This document shows positions 2,754 to 64,000 of a stretch of DNA of 64,000 nt, piece by piece. The notes under the pieces are model-generated. The model was not told where the DNA came from, made no database searches, and saw nothing but the letters and a program-made list of their open reading frames with translations. This stretch comes from Monocercomonoides exilis PA203 (Eukaryota; Protista; Preaxostyla). The position numbers and the translations under genes are program-made. The stretch spans positions 806,001 to 870,000 of the forward strand of contig LSRY02000035.1 of NCBI GenBank assembly GCA_001643675.2, written 5' to 3'. Numbering within the stretch: the stretch's first letter is position 1; every line of letters begins with the position of its first letter.

Positions 2754-3399
2754 AACAGGTTAAGCACCAAATATCATGGAATGAGGGGGAGATGCTTTTT
2801 GTTTGAAGTTAGTCGCTGTTTTGAAATTACAAATGAGTTATTTTCCTGCTTTTAATTTTCAAATATATCTCACCAAATTGATGCAAATCATTTCGTTCTT
2901 TCAATGCTTTTTCGTGGCAGCAAATATAAAATCAAACATATTCGATCAGAATTTAAAAAAAGCCACCTTTTTTTATTCTTATTTAGAGATTTTTTAACTT
3001 CTTCAGTGTAGAATTGTCTTCGAGAAAATACTTTTCTGTTAATGTTGTTCAAAAATGATTCAAAAATATAAAATAATGAAATTTTTTTCAGACAAGGAAT
3101 GTGTCAATTTGCAGAACAATAAGATGGCCATTAACATTTCACCTTATTTTTTGGGCTCATTTAATTTAGAAAAAAATTTGGCGATATCATATTATCTCTT
3201 ATATAATTCGTCACTCACGAAAATGAAAAAAAAATGGATACACTTTCTGTTTCTTCCTTGGTTACAAGGAGCAAATTGAAGAGGAAATAGCGCATTTTTC
3301 GATAGAAGTTGTATCGCTCAATCCCTATTCGAGAATTGGGGATAAACAACCCCAACTCAAAGAATCTGGAATAATGAACAAGCTGATAGCGATGTGTGC

Positions 3400-5860
3400 A
3401 ATGGCTGTCTCACTCTTATAGCCCAGAACAAAATTGTTGCCAACAATGGAACTGATGCTGACGCCTCTGGCAGACCACAACAGACCCCATGTTCCACCAT
3501 CGAATACGCTCTCAACGGTTTCATTTCCCTCCTCTAATACACTTCCCTCACACTCCTCACCTCCTCATTCTTTCTCACTCCAATAATAACCTTCTCACAT
3601 TTTGTGCAAAAATCACTAACTTTGTTACAACTGTTTCAACTTCATCATTCTTCAAGGTGATTGAAGTGTCTTTCTTTTGGAGGTCAGGGTGATGGAGTCG
3701 AAAACAACTGAAAATGTTGCAAAGAGCCAACATGCAATTCTTTAATTCAGAATGTGAACAACGAAATAAGAAAATTGTCATGACGAGAACCATCTCATCT
3801 TCTCATTTTCGTTTCAACTTTCAATCAGATATGAATACTCTTTTCTCCAAATTCTTTTCTTCTTCTTCATTGTTTTCATTCTTTGCCTTTCTCTTCATTC
3901 CTTTTGTTTCTTCTTTTTTTTTTTAAGAGAGCACTTGTTTCATCCATTTCATCTCAAAATGCAATTCTTCAATGCTCAATCAAATTCCATCTCTTTCTCT
4001 TCCTTTTTCTTTCTTTTTCTGTTTTTATCTGCATTTTCTTGTTGACTGAGGACGAGAAGATACTTCACTCACATTCTTTTCTCACAATATAATCCAAAAG
4101 TTCTGCTCCAATTGTATTTTCCCTTCATCTGCTTTGTTTCCACATAAATAAATATTTCTTCATTCATCAATCATTTTCTATCCTTATTCTCTTTCCTTAA
4201 CTGATCTCTCTCAATCTTCGCTCAAAATTATTCTTTTCCTTTCTCTCTTCTTTTCTTTTCCATTTTTCTTCAATTCATGAAATAGTCCAAAAATCTATTC
4301 TTCCAAACCCACCTTTTCTCTCAAGCCGAAAACAAATACAAAGCATTCATTCATATATTAAACTTTTTACTTTGGCTTGCTGAAAATGAATTGAAAAGAC
4401 TTAGCGAATGAATTCACAGCTTTGATGCAAATAGTTGATATGTTCAATGGAAAAGTCTTCCTTTGCCTTTTCTCTTCCATTCTCCAATAATTCTGTTTTC
4501 ATTATCATTCAAAATGAAGAAGAAGAAGAAGAAATTCTGTTTGAAACTCTCGTGCTTTTTTTGATGATGATAGAAGAATAAGAAGAACGAAGAAATATCA
4601 AATGTGAAGTGTTTCGTGTTAGTTGACAGTTTGTTGTGAAGATTTTTAAACAAAATGCGTTTTTGGAAAATGGTGTGAAGAAGAAGATGAACAATGATGA
4701 TTTTGTCCGAAAGAGATGAGCTGCATAAGAGAAGGACAATGAACAAGAAATCATCAGCAGAATTGGCAGATAGATGAAATCTTGAAGAATAAATCAGTGA
4801 GTGAGAGTATTGATTGAATTGCTTATGAAGAAGAAGAAGAAGATTCCAATGAAACAAATACCATTTGATATTCAATGTCTGCCTTCTGCTTCAAACATCC
4901 CACAAATTGAATTGCGAATAAAATAGTTGTTCTGTCAGAACATGATAATAATTCTCCAAAAATACACTCATTGAAAAGAAAGTGCCAAATCCATTTCTGT
5001 GAAAGTGACTTGTCTCTCTTTTCGGTTGGACTGACTTTCTTGTCTTCTCTTCGTAACTTTTTTATTCTTTTGCCATCTTCTCCTTGTTTCATTCATCTGT
5101 GTTGATGCGAAGGTCAGAAATGTTTTCCAATAAAAGAATCTCCAAAAGCGATGTCTTTTCGAGCAATGCTCAAAAGGAATGTAATTTGTGCAGATTATCT
5201 CAGTTTTCGCTCATTCCACATCCAGAAGAAGGAAGAAGATGATGACGAATCCAAAAAATAACTTAAAAATGTTGCTGAATCAAAAACATGAAGAAGAAGT
5301 TGAGCAAATATTGTGAATAAAATTCCTCTCTTTGTTGGAGTGACTTGTGGTGAAGTTGAGCCATATGAGAAGAAGTCAGCAGTATTTCCAGCAGAATGCT
5401 CGGCAAAACAAGCATCACCAAAATTGTCAGTATTGTCAGAAAAAATATTTTGTGTGTGTAGAATGAAACATTCATTGACCATTGAAACATTTCTGTTGCG
5501 ACTGGCGCACTATCAGATGGAATGATGCTGATGCATGTAAAATCTTCGAAAGATGAATTTTCACAACGTTTTCCTGTCGGTTCAGCTGAACATGCAATTC
5601 TTATTCGCTTTTTTCTCCCTTTGTCTTCTCAGCTGCTTTGGTGCTCCTTGGCATCAGCTGAAATTGTTGAGTTTCCTTTCTTTTTCCATTCAACAACAAT
5701 TATGCTGACTCTTTCTTTTCCTTCATAAAATATCTCCATTTCCACCATTTGCGTGGGCAATGATAAATGATATTCTCCAATCTGTTGCTTCACCTGACAA
5801 AATCGATGCTGCATCCCATTCGGATGAAGGCCGAGTGTGCCAACCATCCCACAAAGAGTG
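3400..5860. pseudogene. Decayed fragments, probably of a large surface/beta-helix-like protein family
   Basis: Short motif-like remnants broken by stops and frameshifts: NNGTDADASGRPQQTPCSTIEYAL (+, ~3440-3515); ENSSFEDFTCISI and GNTADFFSYGSTSPQV (-, ~5330-5570). No long ORF. Confidence 0.3.
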
Positions 5861-21777: not shown

Positions 21778-24700
21778 TTATCGTTGAACTGTCGTTGAAG
21801 CAACGCCCACAAATGCGTGAGGATTCGGAGAGACAGTCGAATATGCAGAAATGACACCTTCTGTGGCTGACACAACAGTCACGCAGGTTCCTCCTCTCTG
21901 AGACACCTCCCAGTTCTTCACCTCTTTTTTAGCAGAAGGACACGAACGGCTAGTCGGATGCTTGTGTCTTTTGGCGGCTGAGTCGTGTTCTTCTGGCTGA
22001 AGAGGAAGTGGAACGTCTTCATCGACAACAGGAAGATGCGAGGGAAGAGTTGAAGAATGATCCGCATGTGATGGACTCAAAGAATTCGAAGAAGAAGAAG
22101 AAGAAGACTGTGAAGATGCAGATTCTCTCAAAGAACGCACAGAAGGATGGGGCTGCGCGTCTGCTGGACCAGCCAAAGAAGACAGTTCAGCATCAAATGA
22201 ACCGTCATCTTCGACTCTTTCCAGCTGCTGCAGGCCGCGGGAGAACTGCATCAGCTTCCCATTGATCACTGTTCTGACTGTCTCTTCTCTATCTCTCTTC
22301 CTCTGGCTGAGCAGCGCTGAGACACTAACGCCTTCGTTGGAAGAACAGTTTTCAGTCTCTTCGATGAAAATTGAATCCTCCAGTGTGATGTCGACAGAAG
22401 GCGTAGAGAGCGTCTGCCCGCCGAGAAGAGGTACCAGATAGACAGTGCTTCGGCGGGGGATACCATCTGCAGGCACGAAATAGGTGCCTACACGACAGCC
22501 AACGACGGCAAAGAGAAGCAGATCGACATGGATTGACACACGCACCTTGCCATATGGACACAGAAGAGATGGAGAGAGAGAAGAAGAAGAAGAAGAAGAA
22601 TGAGAAGAAGAAGATGATGATGATGAATGTGTCAATGAAGTTGGAGTGAGGGCGATTGTGACGTGAAATGGGAAAGGCTCGGCAGAAACAACAGTTTTTG
22701 GATGAGAGACAGAAGAGAAGATGCTCAAACGAGGATGATGGATGAGTACTTTTGGTATGGAAGATTGGAAGGAAGAAGTGGAGGTCAATGATGAAGATGA
22801 AGTCAAAGAAGAAGAGGAGGAGGAGGATGAAGAAACAGAAGAAAGGGAAGAAGGAGCTGTTGATGGGAAGATGGATGAAGCATCCTTTGTGTCAGGCTGT
22901 GATGTATTTGGTGGAGCAGTCGGGGTGACAGAAGAAGCAGAAGAAGGAGAAAAGACCAGCGGAGTGAGAGAAAGTGGTGATTTAACTTGGGAAGACGAGG
23001 CAGACGAAGCAGAAAGCGATGAAATGGTGCTGGTGCTACTGCTGTCACTGCTAAGATCCAATGCTCCTTGTTGACTGCTGGGCAGAGAGGAGGAAGGCTG
23101 AGAGAGAAGAGAAGGTGTGGAGGAAGAGGCAGGTGCGAGTGAGAATGAGAGATCAGAGGCGCCAATGGGGAGCGTCTCTGGTTTCAGAGAAGGAGAAGAG
23201 GAGGAGAAGGATGGATGAGGAAGTGGCTCATTCATTGGATGGATGCTGTCTGAGGAGTCTGGTGTTGTTGTTGCAGAAGCAGAAGAAGAAGAAGAAGAAG
23301 AAGAAGAAGAAGAAGGAAGAGAAGAAGCTGAATGTGAATGTGATTGATGTTGATGCTCTTTCTCTTCTTGTGCTGTTTGTGGTGTTGGCAGAGGTGTTGG
23401 AATGGGTAATTTGAATGCGACACGGTGTGTTACTCGAATCTTCCCTGTCTGTTCAACTGTGGCTGTCTGGAACCCGTTTTTGATGAGCGAAAGTTGTGGA
23501 ACATTGTCTTTGTGCTTGTTGGGCTGTATTTCATTAGAAAGTGTGGAATGCTCTTCTTTTTTGATAAGTTCATCAACATTTGAAGTAAGAGTAGAAGAAG
23601 AGGAAGAGGAGGAGGAAGAGGAAGAAGAAGATGATGATGATGATGGAATCAAAGAAGTGCACGGAAGCGGTGTGGGCTGATCAGCAGAGCTGTCATTCCC
23701 ATTCTGTTTAGACTGCCCAGCCAGCATTCTTCCATCGCCAATATCTCTTCCTTTGAGCGAGTGCAGCACACTTTCGTCGTCCATCGACAGCTCCTTCCTC
23801 TTCTCCCTTTCGATTGCTGCCTTCTCTTTCTCCTTCCGCTCCATCTCCTGCGCCTTCTCCAGCGGCGTCTGCAGTTGCGAGTGCACCCTCGTCTTCTTCG
23901 GCTCTGCTACAGCCGTTGAACGAGCAGAAGACGCCTTCAGAGCATCTCTGCTGAGCACAGCTGTTGCCCTGCCAAAGTTCGGAGGCAGTGGATAATCATC
24001 ATCGCCTTCGTCGTTCTTCCCTTTCTCCTTCGAAAGCATTGCCAGTGACGCCTTCTGCTCCTCTCTCTCTTTCTCCTTCTGCCTCTCTTTCTCCTTCTCT
24101 GCCTTCCTCCTCTCCACTTCCTCCACAGTTCTCAGAATCTCCTCCTTTCGCGTGTTTTCCTCTTCGTCCAGCATTTCACCATACAAAAACTGCACATTCA
24201 CCGCAAATACACTCCGCACAACTGCTGCCTCGCCTTTCCCATCAGCCACAATTCCTTTCTTTCTCAATGAAAGAGCTCTTTCCTTCGCCTCGTTCTCATC
24301 GTCTGCTTCTTCTTCATATACTCCACTTATCCCAAACACACCCCGTTTCCTCCTCAAAAGCCCCGCAATGCCTTTTTCTCCGCTTCTCTCTCTATCTCCT
24401 GATACCCCCAGATCTCCCTCCCTCTCTCCCCTCTCTCCATCTCCTCCTCCTCTCTCTCCTCCTCTCATTCCTCCTTCCTCTCTCGCTGCCTTCATCCGCT
24501 CTTTGTCCATTGCTGCCTTCGTGCTCTGCTTCAGCTTCGCCTGCAGAGACTGCAGATAGCTCGTCTTCAGTGTCTGCGCACCAGAACTGCCTCCAACAGA
24601 CAGAAGAGGGCCTGTTGAGAGACCCTTCCGAGTGAAAGGAGACTCGCCACGAAGAGTGCCACCGAGGAAGAAGGAAGAGGAAGTTGAAGATGAGGAAGAG

Positions 24701-27700
24701 GACGATGATGAAGTGGATGAATTGGCAGCAGGAGAGGAAGAAGAAGAAGAAGAAGAAGAAGAAAGAGGAGATGTCTTTGGAGAGCTCAATGCAGATGCAG
24801 CTGTTTGGGATGAGTTGATTGAGGCGTTTGAGCTGCCAGCTGATCCTGTGCTTGCATAGCTCTTCACACTTCCTGTGTCACTCACTTCTTTCTCTTCTTT
24901 CTCTTCTGCCGCTTTCTCTTCAGCTTCTGCACGTCTTCTTTCTTCTTCTTCTCTTTCTTCTTCTTCTTTCGCCTTCTCAATCATCTTCAAAAGCGCTGTT
25001 TCTTCCTTCTCGTCGCTGTATGCAACAGCCAAAAGAGCATTCTGATAGATTTTGTTGAGTGTCTTCTCAAAAGATGAATGAGATGGTTTTTCAATGGAAG
25101 AAGAAGAAGAAGATGATGATGATGCAATAGGTTCATCAATTGTTGTCTCACCTGTTGAAAGATCAGTGCTTGTTGAGGTAATTGAAGAAGAAGGAAGAGA
25201 AGAAGAGGAGGAAGAGGAGGAAGAAGAAGATGATGATGAAATTGATGAAGAATCTGTTTTGTGAGAGAGACGAGCGAATGAAGTGGAATGAAGAGCAGAA
25301 AATGGACAAGGGTCTGTTTGAACAAAGCGAAGGAGATAAAGAAAAGATGCACTTTGAGTGGGCATCAGGCTTAACTTACAAGCAGAAGAAGAAGAAGATG
25401 ATGATGATGATGATGAAACTGATGATGAAATCAGAGAGAAATAGAGAGAATATGATGAAGAAAGCGCACTTGGGATGGCGAGAGTGAGGAGCGGGTCAGT
25501 TACAATCACAGGGACAGACACCATCGACCGCACAAACACAGACAGATACATCAGCTGTGTGTGGGACGAATGGGGCGATGTTCTGACACTCGAAACAGCA
25601 TTCGAATGAGAAGAAGAAGAAGACGAGGCATATGGATTGCTTCTTACACGCCTGGGGACGGGGAAGCAGGAGAAAGAGACAGAAAGAGGAGAGGCAAAGC
25701 GGAGGGTGACCGCAGAAGTGACTGTGTAGTTCTCGTGCTGCTGTGTCTTGTATCGCAGTCCAACATTCATCCTCACTTCTTCCCCGTCTCCACTCAATGC
25801 CATCCTCCTCTGTGTCTCGAGTGTGTCTATGAATGAGCTCACAAGCTCTGCTTTCTTCTCATCCTCCACAAGCTGCCTCTGCTGCTGAATGAGCTGCTGC
25901 TGCTGGAGCTTCTGCTGCTGTGCAATAGAAGCACCGTCGGGTGTCTGTTCTCTTTCTCCGCGTGGCGAGAAGGCAGAGCCGGGCTTTGAGAAGGCAGACT
26001 TTGTGGGCGAAGAAAAGGGGATGGTGGAGAAAGCACGCTGGTGTGTCAGAGGAGGCTGTTTGGATGATGAAAGGAGGAAAGAGTTGGGAGAATTGGTAGT
26101 AAATGTGGAGTTGGCAGAAGGAGACAAGTGCGCAGGTGAATGGCGTGTGGAAGAGGAAGTGAACGGAGAAGAGGGGGAAGAAACAGAAGGCGACTGGCGG
26201 ATCTGAGAAGAAGAAGAAGGCGAAGGAGAGAGAGGCAACGGAAGAGGAAGAGGAAGAGGAGCAGAAAGAGGCAGAGGCTGAGGAAGAGAAAGAGAAGGAA
26301 GGAGCACACGGCGCACTGTCCAGATGGGAATGATCCATCGGACACGCGAATAAGGTGGGATGACAGGGAGGGTGATGACAGCTGGCAGAGCATCGCTGAA
26401 CTCCACAAAAAGCGGCGCATCTGAATGGAACGAGGAAGAAGACGGGAACAGAGTCAGACTGCGCCCGCGAGTGGAGCTGGGGCCTTTGTATTTGCTGAGC
26501 AAAAGACTGTTTGCCTTCGAAGCAGGATTCGCTTTCTTTCCATCTCCCTTTGCGAAATCTGCGTTTTCTTGAGCATCTTCTGATGTGCCCTGGAATAGTT
26601 TGTTGCGCAGGGCAGTTCTGTTTATCTGCTGCTGCTTCAGAAGTTCTGAACGTGGGTCGCTCAAAGTCAAAGTGCCGCTGACGATTCCTTCGCTTCCAGT
26701 GAAGACAGACACGACAAGTGGCTGCAAGGGATCTGTCTCTTTGTGCTTCAACACAACAGAAGAAGAAGATGATGATGATGATATATTTTGTTCATCAAAT
26801 TTATCAAGTTTTGAGCAGCTTCTGTTTAGTCTGGCTTGATCATCTGCATTCTCATTGCCATTCTTCACAGCAGCACAACTGCTTTTGATCGGTCTGTGCA
26901 ACACAGGAAACAGATGCCCCGGTGACGATATGACCACTTTTGCTTGTGGTGAGCACTTCTTCACCACAAACGACAGGTCCTGCCCTTGCAAGTGGCGTGG
27001 GGCTGTGTACAGTCTGAGGGCGCCGACGTGCAAGTTCAGCTGCTCCACACAGAACTCTCCGTCGGGCAGACCCCGCACGTGGAAGCTGAGTGTGTTGAGA
27101 CCTGGGCGCAGGCCGTGCGGGAGGACAAGCGTTGTCACCCACGACTTCTTCAGCTGGGAGGGGTCGAGGGTGTCGGTGGTGCCTGGCTGAGAGGGAGAAG
27201 AGAATGAATTTTGTTTGGAGGATGAAGAAGAAGCAGACTGGGCAGAGCGAATGGAGGAGGAGGCTGAAGATCCGATTGGAGAGAGCATTCTTTCGTTGAG
27301 GGAGATGGCATTCACAGAGATGCATGCACGCTCAAAGAGGAAGTCACAAGGGAAAGGTGACTCGATGTTGACTTTGATGACAGCTGTTCTGCCAAAGTGA
27401 AAAGTCTTGTCTGGCGGAAGCACAAAACGAGGGGTGAAGAGGCAGAACATTTCGTAGTTGGCTTCAGCTGTCAGCTTCTGCTTGGCAGTTGTGCAGAGTC
27501 CAGTGATGAAGGATGTGACGGTGTCTGCAAAGGAAGTGGAGAGAAGATTTGCTTCTGGTGCTGGCAATGCAGGGGAAGGAGAAGGAGAAGGAGAAGGGCA
27601 AGGGGATGGTGAGGGAGAAGGAGAAGGGAATGAAGAAGAAGTGAGACTTGGAGAGGCAGTTAATGAGAGTGTGGAAGCAGCAGTTGCGCCGCTTCCTCTC

Positions 27701-30218
27701 TTGTCGTCTTTAGCCTTCACAACAGTCATCTCCTTATCGACTGCTGTGTCTGCCCTTGCCTCGTTCTTCAGCTCTGCCAGGATGTCCAAGCAGAGCCTCA
27801 CGTATTCTGTGTAATGATGTAGTCTTCGCTGGCACTTCACCAGTCGCACACACGCAGACGTGTACAGCTCGGTCCAGTGTGCCTGCAGATACACTTTGGA
27901 CAGCACTTTGTAGAGCGACTCAGCTTCTTCATAGCGCTTTGTGTAATAATAGACATCAGCAGACTCTTCGTCAAGTGTGTTCAGCTGTCTGTCGCGGGGG
28001 ATGTTTGGCTGTTTGTCCTGCATGGCGCTCATCTGCTTCTCCCGCGGGATGTTCGACAGCTTCTTCACTGCCTCGCGGGTGAGCGACAGAAACTCGTCGA
28101 GGAAGTTCGGGAAGGAGGCGAGGGCGTCGATGAGGCGCGGGTTGGTGAGCACGTTGGCTGAGGAGGTGCTGGGGAGAGGGGAGGTGTGGAGGAAGGGGGA
28201 CATGGTCTGTAACAGATGGGGCACTTGAGAGGAAGGAGAGGATGATCTGGTGGTTGATGGAGAGAGAACACGAGAGGGAGGAGGAGTGGCTGCACGGAGT
28301 GAGGATGACACAGAAGAAGAAGACGGAGATGATGATGAGGAGGAGGAGGAAGGGGAAGAAGGGGAAGAAGGTGATGTGGAATGAGAAGGAGATAGCTGAG
28401 ATGATGAAACAGGAACAGTTGAAACAGAAGAAAACACAGAAGAAGAAGAAGAAGATGATGATGATGAAGGAGACAAAGTGAGTGAAGGTGAGAGTGTCTC
28501 CAGTTCCGTCTGTCTGTTTGGGTGTGGCTCAAACACCATTGCCATCTGCGTGGCACCTCTTTCACCGTTCTTTGCAGGAATGTCTGTGATCGTGTAGAGG
28601 TACCTCGGCACCGTCGACACAACTGCATGCGAAAGAGTGCGTGAATGGAGCAGCTTGCTCTTCAGGATGTCTTCAGCTGTCACTCCTTCTTCGTCATCGA
28701 GATCGGAGTCGTAACCGTCTTCATCATCTTCGTCTTCGTCTTCGTCTTCTTCATTGCCTGCCTCTTTCGTGTTTGTGCATGTGCTTTCTTTTTGATTGAT
28801 CTGGTTGTTTTCATTTGAGTTCTCTTTGTTTGAGTTGCTTTGTGTATCTTCTTCTTTTCCTTTTTCTTCTTTGTTGGTAACATCTTCTGTATCTTTACCC
28901 TTTCCATTCTCCGCCAAGCACTCTCTTCTCATTTTCCTTGCTTTTTTCCTCTTCTTCTCCTCCTCTTCCTCCAGCAGCGCCTTCTGCATGATGTCAGTGG
29001 GGTCTTCGTATCCCAGCAGCTTTCCCAGCTCCACCAGGTGCGAGCGCGCCATCAGGTACATGTCTCCAATGAGGATGATGATGCGCATCTGGTCTGCCAC
29101 ATCCATCGAGTCCAGCCCGTGCGTCAGAAAGACAGTCGCATCCAGCGCACACGAATAGCCCCAGCTGTGCACAAACACGGGGCCCCGCGAGCGCAGCACA
29201 CCCAGCAGCGACTCGATGTCCCGCCGCAGCGTCCGCGCGATGCTTTTGAACTGGCCCGTCAGCCACTGCAACTCATACTGCCTCCGCAGCAGATACACCC
29301 TCGAGTCAAACTTCGTGGAACTTGCTTGCTTGAAACTAAGCACTGTCCCTGGAACCCCGGCTGACGTGAAGGGATTCAGCATGTCGTTCAACTGCTGTGG
29401 GTCGAAGTCAGGGATCGGGTCGTTCATGGATTGCTTGTTCATTCCAACATATATCTCGCACGCCTTTTTGAAAAATGCATACTGTTGATAAAGATACCCC
29501 AGCTTATCCTGAAGAATTTTTTGTTCAATTCCAAACAAGTTCCCGCTTATGTTTTTTTCATCATTTTGAATTTTTTGTAGTCTGTTGTCAAAAACAGATC
29601 CAATACGTTTTGCAAGACGTTTTGTAAGTTCAGCAATGTCAGCTTCAATTTCTGAAGGAGAAGCAAATATATCGAGTTTGAATGCATGGTCCTTTATATC
29701 ACTTGTAAGCCTATTAAAAATTGATTTGGCTTTCTTTGGATTTTCTGCAGTTGCAGGATTTGTGAGTTGAATGGGGATGTATAAAACCATCCATTCCTGA
29801 TCATTTTTATCCATTTCTGAGATGGGAGCTTTTAAAAGACTTGTATAGAAATACTTATATTTACTTTCATCGTCGACAGTGAATAGATAAAGCACCAGAT
29901 GAGGAAGAAAATGAGACGGAAATCCATTTGATTGATGATCATAAATCATTGCAGGATGCAACAAAGAAATTTTTTCATTTATCGATGCAAGTTTGACGTT
30001 TCTCAATGAAAGAATGTCATTTTCATATCTCTGAATGTATGAACGAAGTTGGCAAAGATCTTGCACAGCTGTAAAAATAAAATAAATTTTGCAAAAATTG
30101 TTTCAACGATGTTTCCCCAACTAAAATCAAAAAGCGTCATACATATAACGATTTGTCCTTGAACGTTGACAATCTCTTCGAATGTGGATAACGATTTACG
30201 AGAATTTTGGCTGGTCAT
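21778..30218 (-). CDS. TRAPPC10: TRAPP II subunit TRAPPC10/Trs130 homologue, greatly enlarged by Ser-rich and acidic insertions (~2,790 aa)
   Basis: 2762-codon ORF plus a 5' exon 30143-30218 (intron 30069-30142, T|gtatga...acag|CT). Recognisable blocks: PHLVLYLFTVDD..YK, QEWMVLYI, KLGYLYQQYAFFKKACEIY, FDSRVYLLRRQ, GDMYLMARSHLVELG, LIDALAS...FLSLTREA, ADVYYYTKRYEEAESLY...HWTELY. Confidence 0.75.
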
Positions 30219-52183: not shown

Positions 52184-55100
52184 ATGCAGTCAAAGAAAGG
52201 AAAAGAAAGGAACTTTCGAGAAATAACAATCGGAAGTCATTACGACAAAGAGTTTCCATCCAACTATGTCAGCACAACAAAATATCATCCACTGACATTT
52301 ATTCCAAAGAATTTATTGGAACAATTTAGACGACTTGCGAATTTGTATTTTTTGATGATTGCCATTCTTCAATTGATTCCAAACTTGACAACACTAAATC
52401 CTGTCACTTCAATTTTACCGTTAATTTTTGTTGTTTTGGTAACGATGATTAAAGATCTTGTTGAAGACTTGAGAAGGCTGTCAAGTGATAGAATTGCAAA
52501 TAGTAAGCCTTCATTAGTTTGGAACGGTGGAGAATTTGTTAAAATTCCATGGAAAGATATTAAAGTTGGACACCTTGTGAAAGTTGAATGCGATGAGCTT
52601 GTTCCAGCTGATCTAGTAATCATTTACTCTCCATTGGAACTTGGAGTTTGTAATATTGAAACTTCAAATCTGGATGGAGAAACCAATTTGAAAACAAAAC
52701 AAGCAATCAAGCTTGAAGGACTTTATGCAGACTTTATAAATGATATCAATTGTTTGAAAGGAAAAATTCGATGCGACAATCCACATCCAAATTTACATGT
52801 TTTCAATGGGACTTATTCTCTTCTCGGATTGAGAGACAAACCAATCAATAACACAAACATGATTTTACGATCTTGCTCACTGAGAAACACTCCATACGTT
52901 ATTGGACTTGTTGTATATACTGGGCATGAAACAAAAATCATGATGAATACTGGCGTATCTCCTATGAAGAAAACGAAACTCGAAAAGCTGCTGAACATTT
53001 TTGTATTTATAGCATTTGCATTTCAGCTTCTATTTTGTGTGTTTTGTGCGGCTATGTCAGAAATCTTTATAATCCGGAACAAAGATCATTCATATTTGGG
53101 GATAGGGAATGATAGTCCTCTTTCTGTTGTTGTACGATCCTTTTTTTCGCATGTCATTCTCTTCAACACGCTCATCCCGATCTCTCTTTACGTCACACTT
53201 GAGGTGGTAAAGCTGGGGCAAGTGCTGTTCATCAACCAGGATCTGCAGATGTTCGATCCAAAGAGCGACACACGCGCAAATGCCCGAACATCCAACTTGA
53301 ACGAGTCGTTGGGAATGGTCGAGTACGTGTTCAGTGACAAGACAGGCACACTGACACAGAATGTGATGCAGTTTTTCAAGTGCTCAATCGGCGGGCGTGT
53401 GTTCGGGAAGGGCATTTCTGAGATAAAAGCATCAGAAATGCGGAGAAATGGAGACAAAGCAGCAAAGCCAACAGGACGTGGGTTTGAAGATGATGACCTT
53501 GCTGCACTTTTGATGGGCAGAGAAATTCAGGCAGAGTCATCTGACGAAAAAGAAGACGAGGAGGACTCAGAATACGAGAATGTTAAGATCATCAACGATC
53601 CGAATGATCTCGAAGAAAGCGAAGAAGAAGACGATGATGATGATTCATTGGTGGGCTCATTTCACGTTAGTACCGAAACACTTCGCCAATTCGCTTTTGA
53701 CTTCTTCACTGCACTTTCGCTGTGTCACACGTGCATAACAGAAGCAGACACAGAGAACAACATGACAAGCGGTTCGCTTTCGTTGCCTTATGATTCACCA
53801 CAACAGCACTCCCACTATTCAGAGCAGCATCAACTTTACTCTGCATCGCTTGGTCCACGCGGGTCTGACGATTTATCCTTCGATCTGTCTGATTCGAGTG
53901 TTGCACCATCAGAAATCTCCTTCTCGTCGTCGATGATGTCTTCTTCCTCCTCTTCTTTCCAGTCACATGGCAATTCTTATCTTTCTTCTGGTGACTCTCC
54001 CCAGACAGTTGCCCCCAGAATATACAAGGCATCCTCGCCTGATGAAGGCGCACTGGTCAAAGCTGCCTCCTCGTTGGGATTTGAGTTCCTGGATAAGGAA
54101 AGAAACGGCTACGTTGTGAGGATGCTTCCAGCAGCGGCTCTACATCTGAATCACTCCACTCCTCGTGCTTCTGTTTCAAATGCACACTCACCACATTCAT
54201 TTGCTCCATCTCATATGACTGTTTCTTCTACATCTTCTTCTTTATCATCGCCTATTTCATACAACAAGCAATCCTTTTCACTTCATAACACCTCATCTTC
54301 ATATTCATCTCTTACACCTTCTTATTCGTCCAACTCTCTTGATAGACAAAACCCTTCTTTTTCTCCTCAAACATCTTCCAGTGAAAGTGCGAATGAGCTG
54401 CAAAAAGCAGTCAAAGTGCCTGTGACGTTTGAAGTGCTGCATGTGCTCGAATTCAACTCCGACCGGAAGCGGAACTCAGTGATTGTGAAGCTACCCAACG
54501 ACCACATCCGAATGTATTCGAAGGGTGCTGATGCGACAATGGTGCCGCTGCTGTCAAAGACGAAGACAGATAAAGCATTACTACAGACGACACTGGCACA
54601 GATGGAGGAGTTTGCGGAGGAAGGTCTCAGGACACTTGTGGTGGCACAGAGAGACATCGAAGATGTGATGTGGTACAAGCAGTGGGAGAAGAGGTATTTG
54701 GCAGCTCAGAATGCGATGAATGACAGGCAGAAGAAGATTGATGCAGTTGCTGCAGAGATCGAAGTGGAAATGGAGCTGATTGGAGCAACAGCCATCGAAG
54801 ACAAGCTGCAGGAGGGTGTTCCAGAATGCATCGAAGTGCTGCGAAAGGCGGGGATAAAAGTGTGGGTGCTGACAGGAGACAAGCAGGAGACAGCAATCAA
54901 CATCGGCTTTGCATGCAATCTGCTAACGAGGGATATGCAGATGATCACGGTGTCTGGAGACAACGAAACATTGATCAGGAAGCAGATGAATGAACTGGCA
55001 CACATCTTTGCGACCATTCCTGCATCACACTTTATGAACTATGCTCTGGTGATTGAAGGGTCTGCACTTTCGTATTGCTTATCAGACACAATGCTCTCTG

Positions 55101-56383
55101 CCACACTGGCTGTCTGTATGAAGTGTGGGGTTGTTGTCTGCTGCAGAGTATCTCCCAAACAGAAGGCTGATGTTGTGGGCGCCATTCGCGACAACAGCGA
55201 TGCAACAACACTTTCCATTGGCGATGGAGCAAACGATGTGCCGATGATACAAAGGGCGCATGTTGGCGTGGGGATCAGCGGAAACGAAGGAATGCAGGCT
55301 GTAATGTCGTCGGATTATTCAATTGCGCAGTTCAGATTCCTGCAAAGATTGCTATTGGTGCACGGAAGGCTCAGCTACAAGCGCATTTCGCTGGTTGTGC
55401 TGTACTCGTTTTATAAGAACTTCTCGTTCACTCTGACGATGTTCTGGTTCGGCTGGTTCAACGGCTTTTCTGCTCAGTCAATGTATGAGTCATGGTTTAT
55501 TTCCCTGTTCAACTTGGTCTTCACAGTTGCTCCGATTGTGGTGTATGGTCTGGCAGATGCAGAAATCCCACCAGACACGCTTGCAGACATTCCAGCGTCA
55601 TATGCACTGGGAAGACTAGGCAGAGCAGCGACGCCTGCTTCGTTCATCAAATGGATAGCGGAGGGCATTTGGACGTCTTTTGCTTCCTTTTTCCTGGCGC
55701 TGTTTGTGTTCCAGACGAATGTGCAGTTAGATGGAAGAAGCGAAGACATCTGGTTCTTCGGGAATGCCATCTGCACAGCAGTCATCATCACAGTCACTCT
55801 CAGGCTGTTTATCGAGTGCAACCTTGTCACCTGGATACACTGGCTCATCTTTCTCCTCTCTGTAGTTGCGTGGTTCCTTGTAGCGATCATATTCAATCTT
55901 GGTCTACAGCCGAAGCTGACAGGCTCTTTCTGGAGGAACTGCCAATCGTCTGTGTTCTGGCTGTACATTTGTGTTACGCCTATCGTCTGCATTCTCCCTT
56001 CAGTTTTGATTCGGGGAATCAAACACGCATTCCATCCGACAATAGACAGAATCATAGCAGAGAATGAACACGTGCTGCGCCATCACTACACCAACCACCA
56101 CTGGCGCACACAGCATCCAGCAGATGTGGAGATGGAGGACTCTGATGTGGATGCCCTCGACAGCACAGCGTCCTCCTTGTCTGCCACACAGCCACTTATT
56201 GAGACATCTGACGATGCATCTGTCATCCCCTCTCTTTCTGATGGCCCCTTGTTGGATCACACCCCTCCACCCATCCCTCACTTCCTCCCGCAACACCGCA
56301 AGACACGCACTGGATATGCATTCACGTGGACTGAGGCCCTTCCAGACCCTGCACCTCCTACTGCTTCTTTTGCTTTCACTTGA
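52184..56383 (+). CDS. P4-type ATPase (phospholipid flippase), intronless
   Basis: NYVSTTKY, DGETNLK, PISLYVTLE, FSDKTGTLTQN (phospho-Asp), ASSPDEGALV, FNSDRKR, KGAD, TGDKQETAINIG, CCRVSPKQK, GDGANDV, LLLVHG, plus a C-terminal GYAF motif. Confidence 0.97.
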   Translation: MQSKKGKERNFREITIGSHYDKEFPSNYVSTTKYHPLTFIPKNLLEQFRRLANLYFLMIAILQLIPNLTTLNPVTSILPLIFVVLVTMIKDLVEDLRRLSSDRIANSKPSLVWNGGEFVKIPWKDIKVGHLVKVECDELVPADLVIIYSPLELGVCNIETSNLDGETNLKTKQAIKLEGLYADFINDINCLKGKIRCDNPHPNLHVFNGTYSLLGLRDKPINNTNMILRSCSLRNTPYVIGLVVYTGHETKIMMNTGVSPMKKTKLEKLLNIFVFIAFAFQLLFCVFCAAMSEIFIIRNKDHSYLGIGNDSPLSVVVRSFFSHVILFNTLIPISLYVTLEVVKLGQVLFINQDLQMFDPKSDTRANARTSNLNESLGMVEYVFSDKTGTLTQNVMQFFKCSIGGRVFGKGISEIKASEMRRNGDKAAKPTGRGFEDDDLAALLMGREIQAESSDEKEDEEDSEYENVKIINDPNDLEESEEEDDDDDSLVGSFHVSTETLRQFAFDFFTALSLCHTCITEADTENNMTSGSLSLPYDSPQQHSHYSEQHQLYSASLGPRGSDDLSFDLSDSSVAPSEISFSSSMMSSSSSSFQSHGNSYLSSGDSPQTVAPRIYKASSPDEGALVKAASSLGFEFLDKERNGYVVRMLPAAALHLNHSTPRASVSNAHSPHSFAPSHMTVSSTSSSLSSPISYNKQSFSLHNTSSSYSSLTPSYSSNSLDRQNPSFSPQTSSSESANELQKAVKVPVTFEVLHVLEFNSDRKRNSVIVKLPNDHIRMYSKGADATMVPLLSKTKTDKALLQTTLAQMEEFAEEGLRTLVVAQRDIEDVMWYKQWEKRYLAAQNAMNDRQKKIDAVAAEIEVEMELIGATAIEDKLQEGVPECIEVLRKAGIKVWVLTGDKQETAINIGFACNLLTRDMQMITVSGDNETLIRKQMNELAHIFATIPASHFMNYALVIEGSALSYCLSDTMLSATLAVCMKCGVVVCCRVSPKQKADVVGAIRDNSDATTLSIGDGANDVPMIQRAHVGVGISGNEGMQAVMSSDYSIAQFRFLQRLLLVHGRLSYKRISLVVLYSFYKNFSFTLTMFWFGWFNGFSAQSMYESWFISLFNLVFTVAPIVVYGLADAEIPPDTLADIPASYALGRLGRAATPASFIKWIAEGIWTSFASFFLALFVFQTNVQLDGRSEDIWFFGNAICTAVIITVTLRLFIECNLVTWIHWLIFLLSVVAWFLVAIIFNLGLQPKLTGSFWRNCQSSVFWLYICVTPIVCILPSVLIRGIKHAFHPTIDRIIAENEHVLRHHYTNHHWRTQHPADVEMEDSDVDALDSTASSLSATQPLIETSDDASVIPSLSDGPLLDHTPPPIPHFLPQHRKTRTGYAFTWTEALPDPAPPTASFAFT

Positions 56384-57537: not shown

Positions 57538-60500
57538 ATGCAGACGAGGAATTTATCTTCAACAATGCAACAAAAACCTAAATTTTCTGTTCCAACAAGA
57601 ATTCCACCTCAAACATCTTTTTCAGACACTTCTCAAAATGAAACATGGAGAAGTGATCCTTTTTGTGTGACAGTACTTCAAGAGGAAAATCCTTCATTGA
57701 CACCACTTGAAGAGGAGAGGACAGGAAAGCTGACACACCATTTGAAACATGGAGCAAAAAACTGTCAGGCAGCTTATTTTGAAAATCAAGAAAGTTCAGA
57801 TGATGAGTTACCACCATCTCAAATGGGGTTGCGTTCACCAATTATCGAAGCTCGAAACATGTTTACGCCACCAAAGAAAGAGAAAAAGTCAAAAAAATCT
57901 GACAGTTTGCAAATTATTAAACCAAATAATATTTGATTTTTTTTTAAAAAAATTTGCTCAATTGATGTTTAATTGATGTAAACTGTGAAATGTCAAAACT
58001 CAATGGAAATTTTAGATAGCAAAGAAGCATACATTCATCGACGTTACAAAGGGAGCGCTGCTTTTAAAGCATATGATACAAGCGCAGCTGCAAATTCGCG
58101 TAAAGAAGACGATAGCCTTCCGTTGTACAGAGCCTATTTTGGTGTTGAAGAACTTCTAAGAGAAAAAGAAGAAGAGAGATTGAGGATGAACGATGCAATT
58201 TCAGAACAGGAAAGAATCGGACTAAGTAACATTGAAGAAGACGAAGACGGATTTATTGGAGAAACTTTGCCCACTACTCCAAAAATGAAGTCATCAATAT
58301 CAAAATCTCAAACGTTTTCTCCTTTCTTCTCTTCCACGACACCACAACATTCACCAATTCTTGTTGCTTCATCAGAAATATACTCAACTCCACCTCCGCC
58401 ATTGCCAAGTCCTCTTAAACAATACGATTCGCTTCTAACCTGCCAGCGAAATCTTCTGAGATACCCATCACGTCAATCGAGAAAGGAACGACACAGACGG
58501 AACAAAGCTGCAATTTATGGTTTGAAAAGTTCTTCTCCTACAAACCAAAAAGGAGAAGATAAAACGGGACTTACGCAAAACAAACCACTTTTTAGTCAGT
58601 CTCAACAAGAACAAATAAAACAAGAGCAAAAGCCAATTCACACATCTGCATATCCATTATCACCTCCACTTTATTCCAAGTCTCCTGAATCTCTTTCAAC
58701 TCCTCTCAAGGTTTCATTTCTTCATACACCAGTCACTTCATCTCCTTCAACTTCTTCGTCAGTCCTGACTGCGTCTTCCTCGTCACCTTTACCATCTTCA
58801 TCATCTTCTTCTATTTCTTCACCAGTACCCTCAACTACTGCTTCTTCATCAATTGCTACCTCTGTTACCTCAACTCAATCCGCCGAGTCTACACCGACCG
58901 AATCATTGACTGAAAACAACTCACCACAATCTGCCAAGTTAAATTCCTCATCTTCCACTTCTTCTCTTTCTTCATCCAGAAACTCTTCTCTGTCAATGTT
59001 GCCTGAGATGGAAGCCTTCCGACAGACTGTCATCGCATCTACACCAACAATCAAGCCGCCAGAGTGGATAAATGTTCTCTCTCCTTCTCCATTGTCGCGC
59101 CGACATCTTTCTTTTGACGAAGCGATTGTTGAAGTTGATGAAGAGGACACGGACATCCCCCCTCAATCGCATTCACAACCTCTTCCTTCTGCAACAGAGC
59201 CTTTGCAGGCAGAAGAAGCTCCTCTTTCAGATCCTTTTGCTGCTGTGCAGAAACTTCCTCATCTGAGTACAGATCCATCACCATTTACTCGTTCTTCTCT
59301 CACTGGAAGGACAGATCCTTCAGAAGTTAAACGCTCAGATCGCTCGCAATCATTAACAGTAACATTGACTCAACATCCAAATACAACCCAATCAACAAAC
59401 AACACATCAAAGCTTGCAATTGTGCTGAACGCAGAAGACGAAGGAAAATTAATAAATGAAAGCAAGCACCCAGAAACATGGCAGCAAAATGGAGCAGTAG
59501 ATTTAGCAGCAAGCCTTAATTCTTTTCAAAAGCTACCACAATCTCCTTCATCATTTCATCGTCGTTCTCTTTCGCAGAATTCTCCTTCTCGCGAACTTAC
59601 AGCATCATCTTTGGGTGCACAAGCCGCAGCAGGTGATCGTCGGCACACCATTGCATCTTTCTCTCCATCATCTCTTTCTGATGAGATGAGCTCAAGAATG
59701 AGTCCACCAGCAGACGAGGCAGAGGCAATGTGGAAAGAGCCATTATCTCCAAGAGCGCAGGAGAAAGAGAGGGAAAAAGTGAAAGGATTACATTCAGCAA
59801 TTTTGCGATCAGTTGGAATCTTAAAAGGATCGATCTACACAAAGAAGAAGAATGAAGCAAACGGAGTAGCAGCAAAGAGCAAGAGAAGTCTGTCCCCATA
59901 TACAAGCGAATCTGCAAATAGCACGCTTAGAAGAGGAAATCAAGACTTTTTGAACTCATCTTCAGTCTCGGGAAAATCAAATTCGTATTTCAGATCGTTA
60001 AACTCTTCTTATACAATGGCTTCAGCAAATGAGGATGAGTCGAGAAGAGGAGGTGATGTTGTACCCGACGAAGAGAATGTGCTATTAAACACATTCAAAG
60101 AGCTCACACTAAAGAACACTGCAATTCCTGAAATCATTTCTTCCTCATCCACTTCTACGTTTGATTTATGCAAAACATCGCAAAAGAATGAAATACATAC
60201 AGAAGCGAATACAACATTTGACAAAACAAAAACGAAGAAAGCTGCAAGCAAAGAGGTTTCTTTTCTCAAAGAAGATGGAGGATTCCAGCATCCACCAACA
60301 GCTGTTTCTTCTCTTGCTCGAGCAATTCTTACTGAATATGCAAAAGAAGAAGCAAAAATAAGAGAAAACAAAACACAAATAAAGGAGGATGACAAAGATG
60401 CTTTGTCAGTCTCCGGAGTGGAAGGAGAATACGGCGCAGCTTACGGAGCGAGCGATGCATTTGGACTTGAAGGGGCTGGAGAGAGCGGGAAATTGAAAGT

Positions 60501-61781
60501 TAAATCAGAGGCTTTGCCATCGGAAACAAACAAAATGAGATGGCTGAACGAAAACAGAGTACAAAAAATGATTTCACCAGCAGCTGTGAAGGTTCTTTTT
60601 TCAATGACGCAGCAACAAAAAATAACTAGTGAAGAAAGAAGTGAGAATGAAACAAAAATGAACAGTGCCGATGACCCAGAACATTCACAAATGCAACATA
60701 GCTCAACCGAATATAGTGAATTTGGAAAGCAAAGCGAAGAGGAGGAAGCAACGGAAGAGAAAATACCGGCACGAGACGAGAGCAAAACAAGCATAACAAT
60801 AATTATTGAAAAAGAGAAAAATAGCGAGAGCGAAGAAAAAGAATTAGAAAGCGATGATTCAAGTGAAACAGAATGGGAAAAGTCGCATGGAAATGAATGG
60901 GCTGAACAAATAAAGAAACGGTCGTTAAGGAAAAAGAGCAGCAAGAGAGAAGGAGAAGGAGAAGGAGAAGGAGAAGATGAAGATGAAAGCGATGAGGAAG
61001 AAGAAAACGATCAGCTCGAAGAAGATAAATGCGAAAGTGCTTCAAGCCTTCCATTTTCAAGCGACGAACACGAACAGCGCAAGTCAAACACAAAGACAAC
61101 ACATGAAAAACGGAAACATTTGACACAAACACAGCTGACATATGGCAAATCTTTCGATGAAGTGGCTCAGATGCCTCAACAAAACGCAAAAATTTCTGCA
61201 AATGAAGACACACGATTATCAGAAACACGGCAAAAGATGAAAGAAGAAAGAGAACAGAGAGAAGAAAGAATGAGAAGGAGAGAAATTGAAAAACAAAAGC
61301 GGCTGAAAGAAGTCCAACGAATTGCCAAGAAAGGAAAATGGGGACTCACTCTTAGAAATGCAAAACGTATGCTTTTTTCACCTTTTCGACATGTTTTTAT
61401 AAATTTAAACACTTTTATATTTTTGAAAAAAAATTTGTTTAAAATTCATTTTTAGCTGAACAACCATCAGCGCTGTCTCAAAAGATAAAAAAATTGAAAG
61501 AAAAAGAAGAGCGTCGGGAAGCGACTCAGATTCTTGCGGGTCAGATGCCAACTCGTGTATTAATGCTGATGACAAAACCAGACACGCGGGAATCTCTTGC
61601 ACTCCGCCCAGCCAGATTCGCGCCTCAGCGGATGTCTCGACATGAAAGCGTCGAAAAAGCGAGGCAGTTGCTTGCTGGACGGACCATTTCTATGCTTTCA
61701 ACAGAAGCAACTCCAGAAGATTTGGCCCTTCAAGAGTTTTCTGATCCAAACGGAACAAAGCTTGGTGGAAGTACATTGTAA
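57538..61781 (+). CDS. Hypothetical intrinsically disordered protein (Ser/Pro/acidic), 3 exons
   Basis: ORFs 57472-57936, 57985-61455 and 61494-61781 join in frame via introns 57905-58015 (A|gtttgc...ttag|AT) and ~61367-61455 (C|gtatgc...ttag|CT). No recognisable domain; start uncertain. Confidence 0.7.
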
Positions 61782-62464
61782 ATATCACACATTATTTCAT
61801 ATCATTTGAGATTTGTTAATTATTTTTCTGAAATTCTATTCATGCTTCTTCAAATAAACACTTTGAAGAATTCATTTTCTTTCACAAACACCACCCTTTC
61901 CAATTGACTAATTTATTTAAAGGAAATTTATTTTTCTTTTATTTTCATCCATTTATTCAAAAATCACATGAATGATAAAACCCTTTCTCTCTTTTTCAAT
62001 TCCATTTCATTTTTTTCATTAATTTTTCTTCAATCTCAAAACGATAAACAATCCAAGTTTAATCGTAGATATTTTCTTTCAAATAATGTTGTTTCAATAT
62101 TCACGACTCATTTTGAAGTTTGAAAGAATTAGAGTAAAATTCAGGATGTTATTAAATTTTCAATATTAAAAATAATAAATTAAACTTCCTAAAAACATAG
62201 TCATAACGTTGAACAACATAATGAATAAAAACAAAGATATTGCTCTTTTTGTGATTCTTTCACGACAAATTCATAAATAATAAATTATTATTATTAAATA
62301 AAAAATCTGATATTTCTCTTCATTCCGAAGCAATTTTGTTGTGTCCATATTTTTCATTTATAAATGTGTTTATAATTCACTGTCCTTTGTGAAAAAATAC
62401 GAAAAAGATCAGTTAATGGGCAGTAGTGTCGATAATAATATAAATTATGGCTTGTTTTTGGAAC

Positions 62465-64000
62465 ATGTCTTCCGACGAATTGCTTGGTCCACAGGACCCT
62501 GTCGCAGTTGTAGGGCTTGGAGCTCGTTTGCCCGGAGGTGCTAATTCACCTGAACAGTTTTGGAAATTACTTCTTGAAGGATATGATGGAATTTCTGACA
62601 TACCTAAAGAACGTTGGGACGGAGCGTATTTTCATGACCCAGAAAATCTTGGACTCGTTGGTAAATCTATTCAAAATAAAGGTGGTTTTTTGAAAGGATA
62701 TAACATTGATGAAATTGACTTGAAATTCTTTTATCTTTCACCAAGAGAAGCAAAGACTCTTGATCCCAATCAGAGACTTTTGTTGGAGGTTACATATGAA
62801 ACATTTGAAAATGCTGGTGTTCCCTTGGAGCATATCAGCGGTAGCAGGACTGGAGTTTTTGTGGGTATCTCTGCAACAGATTATTCACATTTACAATTTC
62901 CAGACATCAACACAATCGATGTGCACACACAAACAGGCGTTTCCACTTCAATCAACGCAAATAGATTGTCATATTTTTACAATTTAATCGGTCCTTCATT
63001 CATTGTTGATACAGCTTGCTCATCAACACTTGTTGCATTAAACTGTGCTTGTCAATCAATGAGAACCAGAGAATGCGACTCAGCTTTGTGCGGAGCCGTT
63101 AACCTTATGATGTATCCAGAAATCTCAATTGGATTTTCAAAACTTGGAGTTCTCTCGCCTGACGGTCATTGCAAAGCATTTGATGCAAAAGCAAATGGAT
63201 ACGTGAGATCTGAAGGTTGCGGAATGGTTCTTTTGAAACGTCTTTCCGATGCAGAAAGGGATGGTAATCGTATCTATGCAGTTATCAGAGGAACTCATGT
63301 TGGCTCTGATGGGCATTATCAACAACAAATGACTTCTCCATCAGAACAACAACAAGCCGTTGTTTTGAGAGAAATTTTGAAGAAGTCATCAATTCAATCG
63401 GCAGATGTTGGATATGTTGAGTCACATGGAACAGGTACATTCGTTGGAGATCCTATTGAATGCCGTTCTGTAAGCTCAGTGTTGAATATCGGACGAAAGG
63501 ATGATGAACATATTTTAATTGGCTCCGTGAAATCAAATGTGGGCCATTTAGAGCCTGCAGCTGGTATTGTATCAATTATTAAAGTTTCAATGTGCCTTAA
63601 GGAGAAGATGATTCCAGCAACAATCAGCGTAAAAAAACCAAATCCAAATATCGACATGCAGAAACTGAACTTGAAGATCGTAACATCACATATGAAATAT
63701 CCAGAAGGCAGAAACGGAATGCCAAGAACTGCAGTTATTTCCGCTTTTGGCTTTGGAGGAACAAACGGAGGATGCGTGATGCAGGAATACACCGGAAATA
63801 AAGGCTTGAAGGATGTTCCAAGCGGACTTAAGGAAATTGAAAGAGAAGAACTGTTTATTCTTTCAGCCCGATCTGTCGATGCTTTGAAAGGATACGCCAA
63901 AAAATTGGCAGAATTCATGTCTTCACATTCTTGCCCACCCATCCAGCACATCGCATACACACTTGGCTGCCACAGAACACAACACAAGCAATGCAGACTC
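62465..64000 (+). CDS. Type I polyketide synthase / type I fatty acid synthase, N-terminal part (complete ketosynthase + KS-AT linker); 3'-truncated by the window
   Basis: Uninterrupted 512-codon frame from ATG 62465 (alternative ATG 62447) to the window end: DPVAVVGLGARLPGG.NSPEQFWKLL, ERW, GGFL, SPREAKTLDPNQRLLLEV, TGVFVG, ANRLSYFYNLIGPS, DTACSS (Cys 63017-63019), DGHCKAFDAKANGYVRSEG, YVESHGTGT (His 63425-63427), IGSVKSNVGHLE (His 63545-63547), FGFGGTN, LFILSARSVDAL, IAYTL. Confidence 0.97.
   Translation, partial: MSSDELLGPQDPVAVVGLGARLPGGANSPEQFWKLLLEGYDGISDIPKERWDGAYFHDPENLGLVGKSIQNKGGFLKGYNIDEIDLKFFYLSPREAKTLDPNQRLLLEVTYETFENAGVPLEHISGSRTGVFVGISATDYSHLQFPDINTIDVHTQTGVSTSINANRLSYFYNLIGPSFIVDTACSSTLVALNCACQSMRTRECDSALCGAVNLMMYPEISIGFSKLGVLSPDGHCKAFDAKANGYVRSEGCGMVLLKRLSDAERDGNRIYAVIRGTHVGSDGHYQQQMTSPSEQQQAVVLREILKKSSIQSADVGYVESHGTGTFVGDPIECRSVSSVLNIGRKDDEHILIGSVKSNVGHLEPAAGIVSIIKVSMCLKEKMIPATISVKKPNPNIDMQKLNLKIVTSHMKYPEGRNGMPRTAVISAFGFGGTNGGCVMQEYTGNKGLKDVPSGLKEIEREELFILSARSVDALKGYAKKLAEFMSSHSCPPIQHIAYTLGCHRTQHKQCRL

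Follow-up and report, generated by a model that had tools for sequence, protein, structure and literature searches.

A predicted type I megasynthase of Monocercomonoides exilis in which a polyketide synthase-type module ends in a malonyl/palmitoyl transferase of the fungal fatty acid synthase kind

The animal fatty acid synthase (FAS) is a single iterative module with the domain order ketosynthase (KS), malonyl/acetyl transferase (MAT), dehydratase (DH), pseudo-methyltransferase (psiME), pseudo-ketoreductase (psiKR), enoylreductase (ER), ketoreductase (KR), acyl carrier protein (ACP) and thioesterase (TE). Its psiME is inactive and its TE, placed after the ACP, frees palmitate. Pks16 of Dictyostelium discoideum is an enzyme of the polyketide synthase (PKS) type, thought to be the primary FAS of that organism, in which the methyltransferase (MT) is described as inactive and no off-loading domain is fused to the protein. 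The mycobacterial mycocerosic acid synthase (MAS) is fully reducing and iterative and makes methyl-branched fatty acids; it has no MT, as its branches come from methylmalonyl-CoA, and it has no release domain. The highly reducing PKSs (HR-PKSs) LovB and LovF of fungi, and CurJ and CurL of cyanobacteria, end in a condensation (C) domain, a TE or an ACP, or hand the chain to a next module. The malonyl/palmitoyl transferase (MPT) of the fungal-type FAS is made up in Saccharomyces cerevisiae from the C-terminus of Fas1 and the N-terminus of Fas2, and lies on a single chain in early fungi and oomycetes. Here we describe a gene of the oxymonad Monocercomonoides exilis PA203 that is predicted to encode a PKS-type reducing module ending in an MPT of this kind. 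Its 5' part closes the window, a 64,000-nucleotide stretch of contig LSRY02000035.1 (here C31; positions 806,001 to 870,000, forward strand) of assembly GCA_001643675.2. An initial annotation, made from the letters of the window alone, had guessed that the DNA might come from an oxymonad, and the genome is indeed that of M. exilis.

The reading frame opens at an ATG at position 62465 of the window and runs off its end on the forward strand, so that 62465..64000 (+) holds the first 512 of 3,526 codons without a stop. In the genome DNA past the window end the frame continues to a stop codon at C31:879043-879045 (window coordinate 73045), giving 10,578 nt free of stops and a gene that is intronless across 10.6 kb. 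The 3,526-aa translation equals the public gene model letter for letter and the start of that model is also 62465. Counted from stop to stop, the frame begins at 62444 (C31:868444) and reads IMACFWNMSSDE, with an alternative in-frame ATG 18 nt (6 codons) 5' of 62465 (62447..62464, +). The gene, which the initial annotation had called hidden from the open reading frame (ORF) track, is absent from the program-made list of ORFs only because it runs past the window end. That annotation had also described the gene as free of introns and, unlike most of its neighbours, of poly-serine inserts. Both descriptions hold: the frame carries no stop or frameshift up to C31:879043, and the protein has no homopolymer run of five or more residues and 8.2% serine, compared with S5-S6 runs and 14-16% serine in the flanking ORFs.

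Pfam searches gave the order KS-AT-DH-cMT-ER-KR-ACP, where AT is an acyltransferase (AT1 below) and cMT a C-methyltransferase (C-MT), followed by a second acyltransferase at the C-terminus, with one KS-to-ACP module per protein. The KS (aa 11-389) lies inside the window. Its N-terminal domain (aa 11-263; 62495..63253, +) matches PF00109 with an E-value of 1.4e-83 and was recovered at the same site in a whole-genome scan; its C-terminal domain (aa 271-389; 63275..63631, +) matches PF02801 (Ketoacyl-synt_C, E 2.6e-35). Scores of this size exceed chance by a wide margin. The catalytic triad is formed by Cys185 in DTACSS (codon 63017..63019, +), which is invariant in six Preaxostyla orthologues, and by His321 in HGTGT (63425-63427, +) and His361 in NVGHLE (63545-63547, +), both within the C-terminal domain. 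The atypical motif SAFGFGGTNGG stands just 5' of the KS-AT linker, which spans aa ~392-555 and is clipped by the window end (aa 392-512; 63638..64000, +). The linker contains LSARS...IAYTL and matches PF16197, PF22621 (CurL-like) and PF22336 (RhiE-like linker). Beyond the window are the AT (aa 558-815; C31:870136-870909), DH (aa 988-1290; C31:871426-872334), MT (aa 1578-1680; C31:873196-873504), ER (aa 2103-2399; C31:874771-875661), KR (aa 2431-2611; C31:875755-876297) and ACP (aa ~2848-2905; C31:877006-877179), and then the second Acyl_transf_1 domain (aa ~2976-3526; C31:877390-879042).

The expected catalytic motifs are present in each of these domains. AT1 has GQGSQ, GHSLGE (Ser649) and the downstream carboxylate-binding Arg; the DH has HCLQGNIVVP, the ER of this copy a canonical HAATGGVG, the KR its Ser, Tyr2582 and Asn, and the ACP GLDSL (Ser2862). 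The MT carries LEVGAGTGG, AANVVHAT and LLEA, and its top match in the PDB is the C-MT of CurJ (E 4e-49). As this match includes an aligned His/Glu region, the C-MT appears to be active, whereas animal FAS has a pseudo-MT. The six Preaxostyla orthologues keep every KS, AT1, DH, MT, KR, ACP and MPT motif, the ER motif being the exception. As read from its domains, the protein is a single-module type I megasynthase of the animal-FAS and HR-PKS architectural class, and its single module with a complete reducing set would work iteratively. The initial annotation had seen the Cys-His-His triad, the unusual SAFGFGGTNGG and the linker ahead of an AT, and from these had taken the protein for a multidomain cis-AT type I synthase, not a stand-alone KS. 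The complete domain map bears this out, and of the further domains it had named, AT, DH, ER, KR, MT and ACP were found. A terminal TE or reductase was not; the protein ends in an MPT instead.

This last domain was compared with all PDB sequences using phmmer. It matched residues 1686-2073 of the fungal FAS beta subunit (E 2e-64), and the final 60 residues matched alpha-subunit residues 8-66, the MPT piece that yeast encodes on Fas2. Because the match runs on into the alpha-subunit piece, the MPT is complete and continuous. Alignment of 30 sequences, among them fungal and oomycete MPTs, shows no variation in GHSLGEY (Ser3146), the malonyl-binding Arg (IRGMVMQ) or PFHS (His3322). When aa 2835-3526 were modelled with AlphaFold2, the MPT reached a predicted local distance difference test (pLDDT) score above 90, the ACP came out at lower confidence, and the linker between the two was disordered. 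A Foldseek search with this model ranked fungal FAS chains first, with a template modelling (TM) score of 0.88 to the isolated palmitoylated yeast MPT (9pqz_G). By sequence and by predicted structure, the terminal domain is a complete fungal type I FAS malonyl/palmitoyl transferase fused behind the ACP, in the position held by the TE in animal FAS. Pfam detected no PF00975 thioesterase in the synthase protein and none of the fungal barrel families (AT, FMN-ER, MaoC-DH, Fas1-AflB helical region, KR/KS/PPT), and PF08354, representing the fungal FAS body, had no match in the whole genome although its positive control matched.

The enzyme resembles each of the described systems in part. With fungal FAS it shares 30-36% identity over ~520 residues of MPT, the GHSLGEY, Arg and PFHS motifs, and the segment that lies on the yeast alpha subunit. 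However, the oxymonad MPT closes a PKS-type module behind an ACP and a disordered linker and the barrel body is absent, and the protein is not a fungal-type FAS because the MPT alone is shared. It follows animal FAS in overall domain order, in being one iterative module and in having a release domain after the ACP; it is not an animal-type FAS (EC 2.3.1.85) because it has no TE and an apparently live MT, and its transferase would yield acyl-CoA where the animal TE yields palmitate. The order KS-AT-DH-MT-ER-KR-ACP is that of Pks16, against which query aa 1-2900 scored 626 bits; the oxymonad enzyme differs in its intact C-MT and its C-terminal MPT. MAS was the top overall PDB match (E 3.7e-236) and differs from the oxymonad enzyme in lacking both an MT and a release domain. 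With LovB, LovF, CurJ and CurL the protein shares KS-AT linker families and a C-MT with the His/Glu region, but these enzymes terminate differently, and no MPT was found on an HR-PKS or Cur-type enzyme in the PDB or in the literature searched. Bacterial modular cis-AT PKSs are set apart from it by its one module per protein and its location in a eukaryotic nuclear genome.

A scan of the whole M. exilis genome found eight KS domains, all within six giant ORFs, and no type II KS. Three of the six ORFs, on contigs C31, C2 and C23, have the architecture KS-AT-DH-MT-ER-KR-ACP-MPT and are 68-72% identical to each other. The remaining three are PKSs primed by a fatty acyl-AMP ligase (FAAL). A search with the MPT part recovered the same architecture in Blattamonas nauphoetae (two proteins, 50-51% full-length identity) and Paratrimastix pyriformis (37%), and below these Preaxostyla proteins came ordinary fungal-type FASs at 33-36% identity. 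In a maximum likelihood tree of MPTs, rooted on mycobacterial-type FAS-I (an outgroup member was matched to mycobacterial FAS-I in the PDB), the PKS-MPT proteins form one clade (support 100/100) in which Paratrimastix is sister to the oxymonads and the three M. exilis copies are monophyletic (100/100). This clade lies outside the fungal one on a long stem (~1.05) and joins a group of oomycete and other protist sequences at 86/83. A KS tree recovered the Preaxostyla clade with support of 99 and the same internal topology; it was built from Preaxostyla and bacterial sequences only and bears on this internal topology, not on the origin of the KS. Homologue searches with the KS or KS-AT returned no eukaryotic PKS or FAS references, since bacterial PKSs with several KS domains dominated them through summed scores higher than those of single-module proteins. 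Since the MPT and KS trees both follow the species tree, the fusion is older than the split between Paratrimastix and the oxymonads and has been inherited vertically since then. Two metagenomes of the Joint Genome Institute (JGI) contain fragments with the orders MT-ER-KR-ACP-MPT and ACP-MPT (3300042605 and 3300006387). In the MPT tree one fragment clusters with the oxymonads, the other with Paratrimastix, so that more uncultured Preaxostyla carry the hybrid.

The genome also encodes functions that such an enzyme would need. The initial annotation had proposed a search for an Sfp-type phosphopantetheinyl transferase (PPTase) and an acetyl-CoA carboxylase (ACC). A PPTase of the AASDHPPT type was found at C51:186719-187765 (+); the predicted protein of 349 aa matches AASDHPPT_N (5e-24) and ACPS, and is the sole PF01648 match in the genome. 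The ACC search was answered in part, with a candidate source of malonyl-CoA found and the classical enzyme missing. Three genes, at C6:1309840-1313625 (+), near C6:1443000 (-) and near C5:1149000 (-), encode a 1,262-aa fusion of the order Carboxyl_trans-ACCA-HMGL-like-PYC_OADA-biotinyl that contains no biotin carboxylase, and the whole genome has no match to Biotin_carb_C. The probable source of malonyl-CoA is therefore a transcarboxylase that works without ATP. Entamoeba and Giardia have a fused transcarboxylase that converts acetyl-CoA and oxaloacetate to malonyl-CoA, and the M. exilis fusion matches that kind. Elongases of the ELO family are also encoded. Stand-alone thioesterase (PF00975) ORFs of ~310 aa occur at C51:573708-574325 (+) and C18:417821-418459 (-), with weaker, intron-split matches on C58, C35 and C6.

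The FAAL-primed synthases were searched one ORF piece at a time, as unspliced models. Two near-identical ORFs at C28:712396-728370 (+) and C28:1017376-1033086 (+), of 5,325 and 5,237 aa from stop to stop, have the bimodular order AMP-binding-ACP-KS-AT-KR-ACP-KS-AT-DH-ER-KR-ACP-TE. Both begin in the middle of the AMP-binding domain, which makes an upstream exon likely. The third, on the reverse strand of C5 from 1347969 down to ~1335003, consists of AMP-binding-ACP-KS-AT followed by DH-KR and a C-terminal class I/II aminotransferase resembling alpha-oxoamine synthases. It is split into two adjacent ORFs of 2,393 and 1,919 aa that lie ~30 nt apart, and either an intron or a stop could account for the gap.

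We propose, with a probability of about one in two, that the hybrid is an iterative, fully reducing and possibly C-methylating synthase that releases its product through the MPT as acyl-CoA and, with its two paralogues, is the de novo acyl source of the organism. Pks16 offers a precedent for a protist in which an HR-PKS-type enzyme serves as the FAS. The Sfp-type PPTase would prime the ACP. Malonyl-CoA supplied by the biotin transcarboxylases would be loaded by AT1, with its GHSLGE and Arg, and possibly by the MPT as well. The KS, KR, DH and ER would then build a saturated acyl chain over repeated cycles, in some of which the C-MT may methylate the chain. The MPT would move the finished chain from the ACP to free CoA, as in yeast FAS, and the acyl-CoA so formed could be used directly by elongases of the endoplasmic reticulum and by glycerolipid acyltransferases. 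A releasing role for the MPT is suggested by its position, which is that of a release domain, and by analogy with yeast MPT, which uses the same residues for both half-reactions. The initial annotation had suggested that the gene could represent a cytosolic pathway to fatty acids, long-chain lipids or secondary metabolites; its interpretation is supported, and is extended by the MPT, the paralogues and the conservation across Preaxostyla.

Several observations weigh against this proposal. In rankings by PDB bit score, which are not a phylogeny, the KS and AT1 are nearest to bacterial cis-AT PKSs (CurL 400, Pks16 355, MAS 349 and animal FAS 264 for the KS). AT1 has a non-canonical specificity motif, EPMH. 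The C-MT looks active, while bona fide FASs such as animal FAS and Pks16 have an inactive one or none, and this points to a methylated polyketide-like lipid. The ER is the least conserved catalytic domain (37-43% identity, compared with 57-88% for the others), and its NADPH motif HAATGGVG, in the region aligned to C31 aa 2218-2240, reads TGATGATG in C2 and HNAADAIG or HNATEAVG in Blattamonas. The proteins of C31, C23 and Paratrimastix thus retain GGVG, whereas that of C2 and the two from Blattamonas have lost it. The ER may be inactive or altered in some family members, and its degeneration there makes a uniform housekeeping FAS role doubtful. The stand-alone thioesterases could act in trans in release or editing for the megasynthases. 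What the enzyme makes, and which way the MPT moves acyl groups, are predicted from sequence. The final 2.8 kb of the gene (C31:876212-879045, the KR end, ACP and MPT) received no metatranscriptome contig, in records that had been filtered so that gaps carry no weight; the gap could stem from the filter, from a broken contig graph or from a genuine 3' end.

The RNA gap at the ACP-MPT end, the bacterial-PKS-like KS and AT, and the presence of ~30 bacterial species in the M. exilis culture would suit an artefact: bacterial contamination, an assembly chimera of a PKS with a FAS fragment, or a dead gene. Such an origin is hardly credible. The synthase lies ~200 kb inside a 1.07-Mb contig of a Nanopore (ONT) assembly of 101 contigs and 82,301,135 bases (PMC8767320), and Pfam identifies the next gene downstream as a homologue of the eukaryotic POP1 (RNase P/MRP). 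Its GC content is 44.6%, with 39% at third codon positions (GC3), and its codon usage correlates with that of its neighbours at r = 0.70-0.72. Given this embedding, the POP1 neighbour and the base and codon composition, contamination or a chimeric join is not tenable, and the bacterial join that the initial annotation had considered finds no support on a contig where eukaryotic genes flank the synthase. The same fusion recurs in three paralogues on three contigs (C2 and C23 besides C31) and in two further Preaxostyla genomes, and contamination and chimerism were ruled out on these grounds also. A dead gene is countered by 10.6 kb of frame without a stop and by RNA. Four metatranscriptome runs from a single study (2024) contain 97-98% of the words sampled from window positions 62465-64000, and contigs from those runs matched ~3.2 kb from the MT to the middle of the KR (C31:873047-876211, to ~aa 2582) without any difference or joint. 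The RNA contigs equal the genome sequence across the KS and MT-to-KR parts, and the window's copy is at least partly transcribed.

The main competing explanation is a highly reducing PKS of secondary metabolism, whose product would be a specialised reduced polyketide with C-methyl groups, for instance a lipid for signalling or defence, passed by the MPT-like domain to CoA or another acceptor. The conserved C-MT nearest to CurJ, the affinity of the KS and AT to bacterial modular PKSs, and the divergence of the ER across paralogues and orthologues, which is usual for PKS families, all agree with it, as do the clearly PKS-like FAAL-primed synthases of the same genome and a published reconstruction that found no short-chain FAS. 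We nonetheless regard it as rather unlikely, since the architecture and all motifs have been held vertically over the deep Paratrimastix-oxymonad split and the MPT is otherwise limited to primary FASs. The genome, moreover, has no other KS genes for de novo synthesis, and its elongases require primers. Still less probable, in our view, is an exchange of transferase roles, with the MPT as malonyl loader, AT1 as starter loader, and release by a thioesterase or acyltransferase acting in trans. The malonyl-binding Arg and the Ser-His dyad retained in the MPT would permit this, and the atypical EPMH of AT1 and the thioesterase ORFs at C51:573708 and C18:417821 fit it. Against it, AT1 retains the GQGSQ, GHSLGE and Arg that are typical of ATs specific for malonyl, there would be no need for a second loader, and the MPT stands exactly where type I synthases place their release domains.

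Around the gene, an AT-rich intergenic or 5' region (61456..62464) separates the synthase start from an upstream ORF of 1,156 aa (window 57985-61455, +), which has 15.9% serine, an S6 run and no Pfam match. Two segments of the window (22001-30000 and 54001-56000) have a GC content of 47-52%, compared with a window mean of 37% and flanks of 24-29%. Past the synthase by 8 kb, and downstream of POP1, is a 592-aa ORF (C31:887276-889051, -) for a PIF/Harbinger-like transposase (DDE_Tnp_4 / DDE_Tnp_1).

Components of short-chain fatty acid synthesis were not found in the M. exilis genome paper (Karnkowska et al. 2019). M. exilis can make medium-chain fatty acids according to the metabolic reconstruction of a 2025 consortium paper, which also reported the ~30 bacterial species in the culture. 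A 2023 Preaxostyla paper gives two M. exilis 'polyketide synthase' models, solely as table rows, and a 2026 FAAL survey noted FAAL-PKSs in Preaxostyla. Public records give automatic names only ('putative polyketide synthase PksE', 'putative beta-ketoacyl synthase' and 'Highly reducing polyketide synthase easB'). A limited literature search turned up no account of a natural PKS-type module with an MPT at its end, and none of a PKS-MPT enzyme in the literature on polyketide or fatty acid synthases of Monocercomonoides or Preaxostyla.

The fusion shows domain exchange between two structurally unrelated type I FAS lineages and provides a shared character for Preaxostyla. It also represents a natural swap of release chemistry, CoA transfer in place of hydrolysis, of a kind that FAS and PKS engineers build by hand. 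M. exilis serves as the reference for amitochondriate life and, to our knowledge, Preaxostyla include the only eukaryotes that lack mitochondria. We consider it quite possible, though somewhat short of probable, that de novo synthesis of fatty acyl chains in Preaxostyla takes place in the cytosol on a hybrid megasynthase specific to the lineage, in which a catalytic body of the PKS and animal FAS type is joined to the releasing MPT of the otherwise unrelated fungal-type FAS. The product would be a (possibly methyl-branched) acyl-CoA and not a free acid. With three intact, conserved copies, a PPTase and transcarboxylases in hand, de novo acyl synthesis in M. exilis is directly testable. The published metabolic map (2019 genome paper) assumes that M. 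exilis scavenges its lipids. If our proposal is true, that lipid map would be corrected, and the hybrid would add a third way in which type I fatty acid synthesis has been solved in nature.

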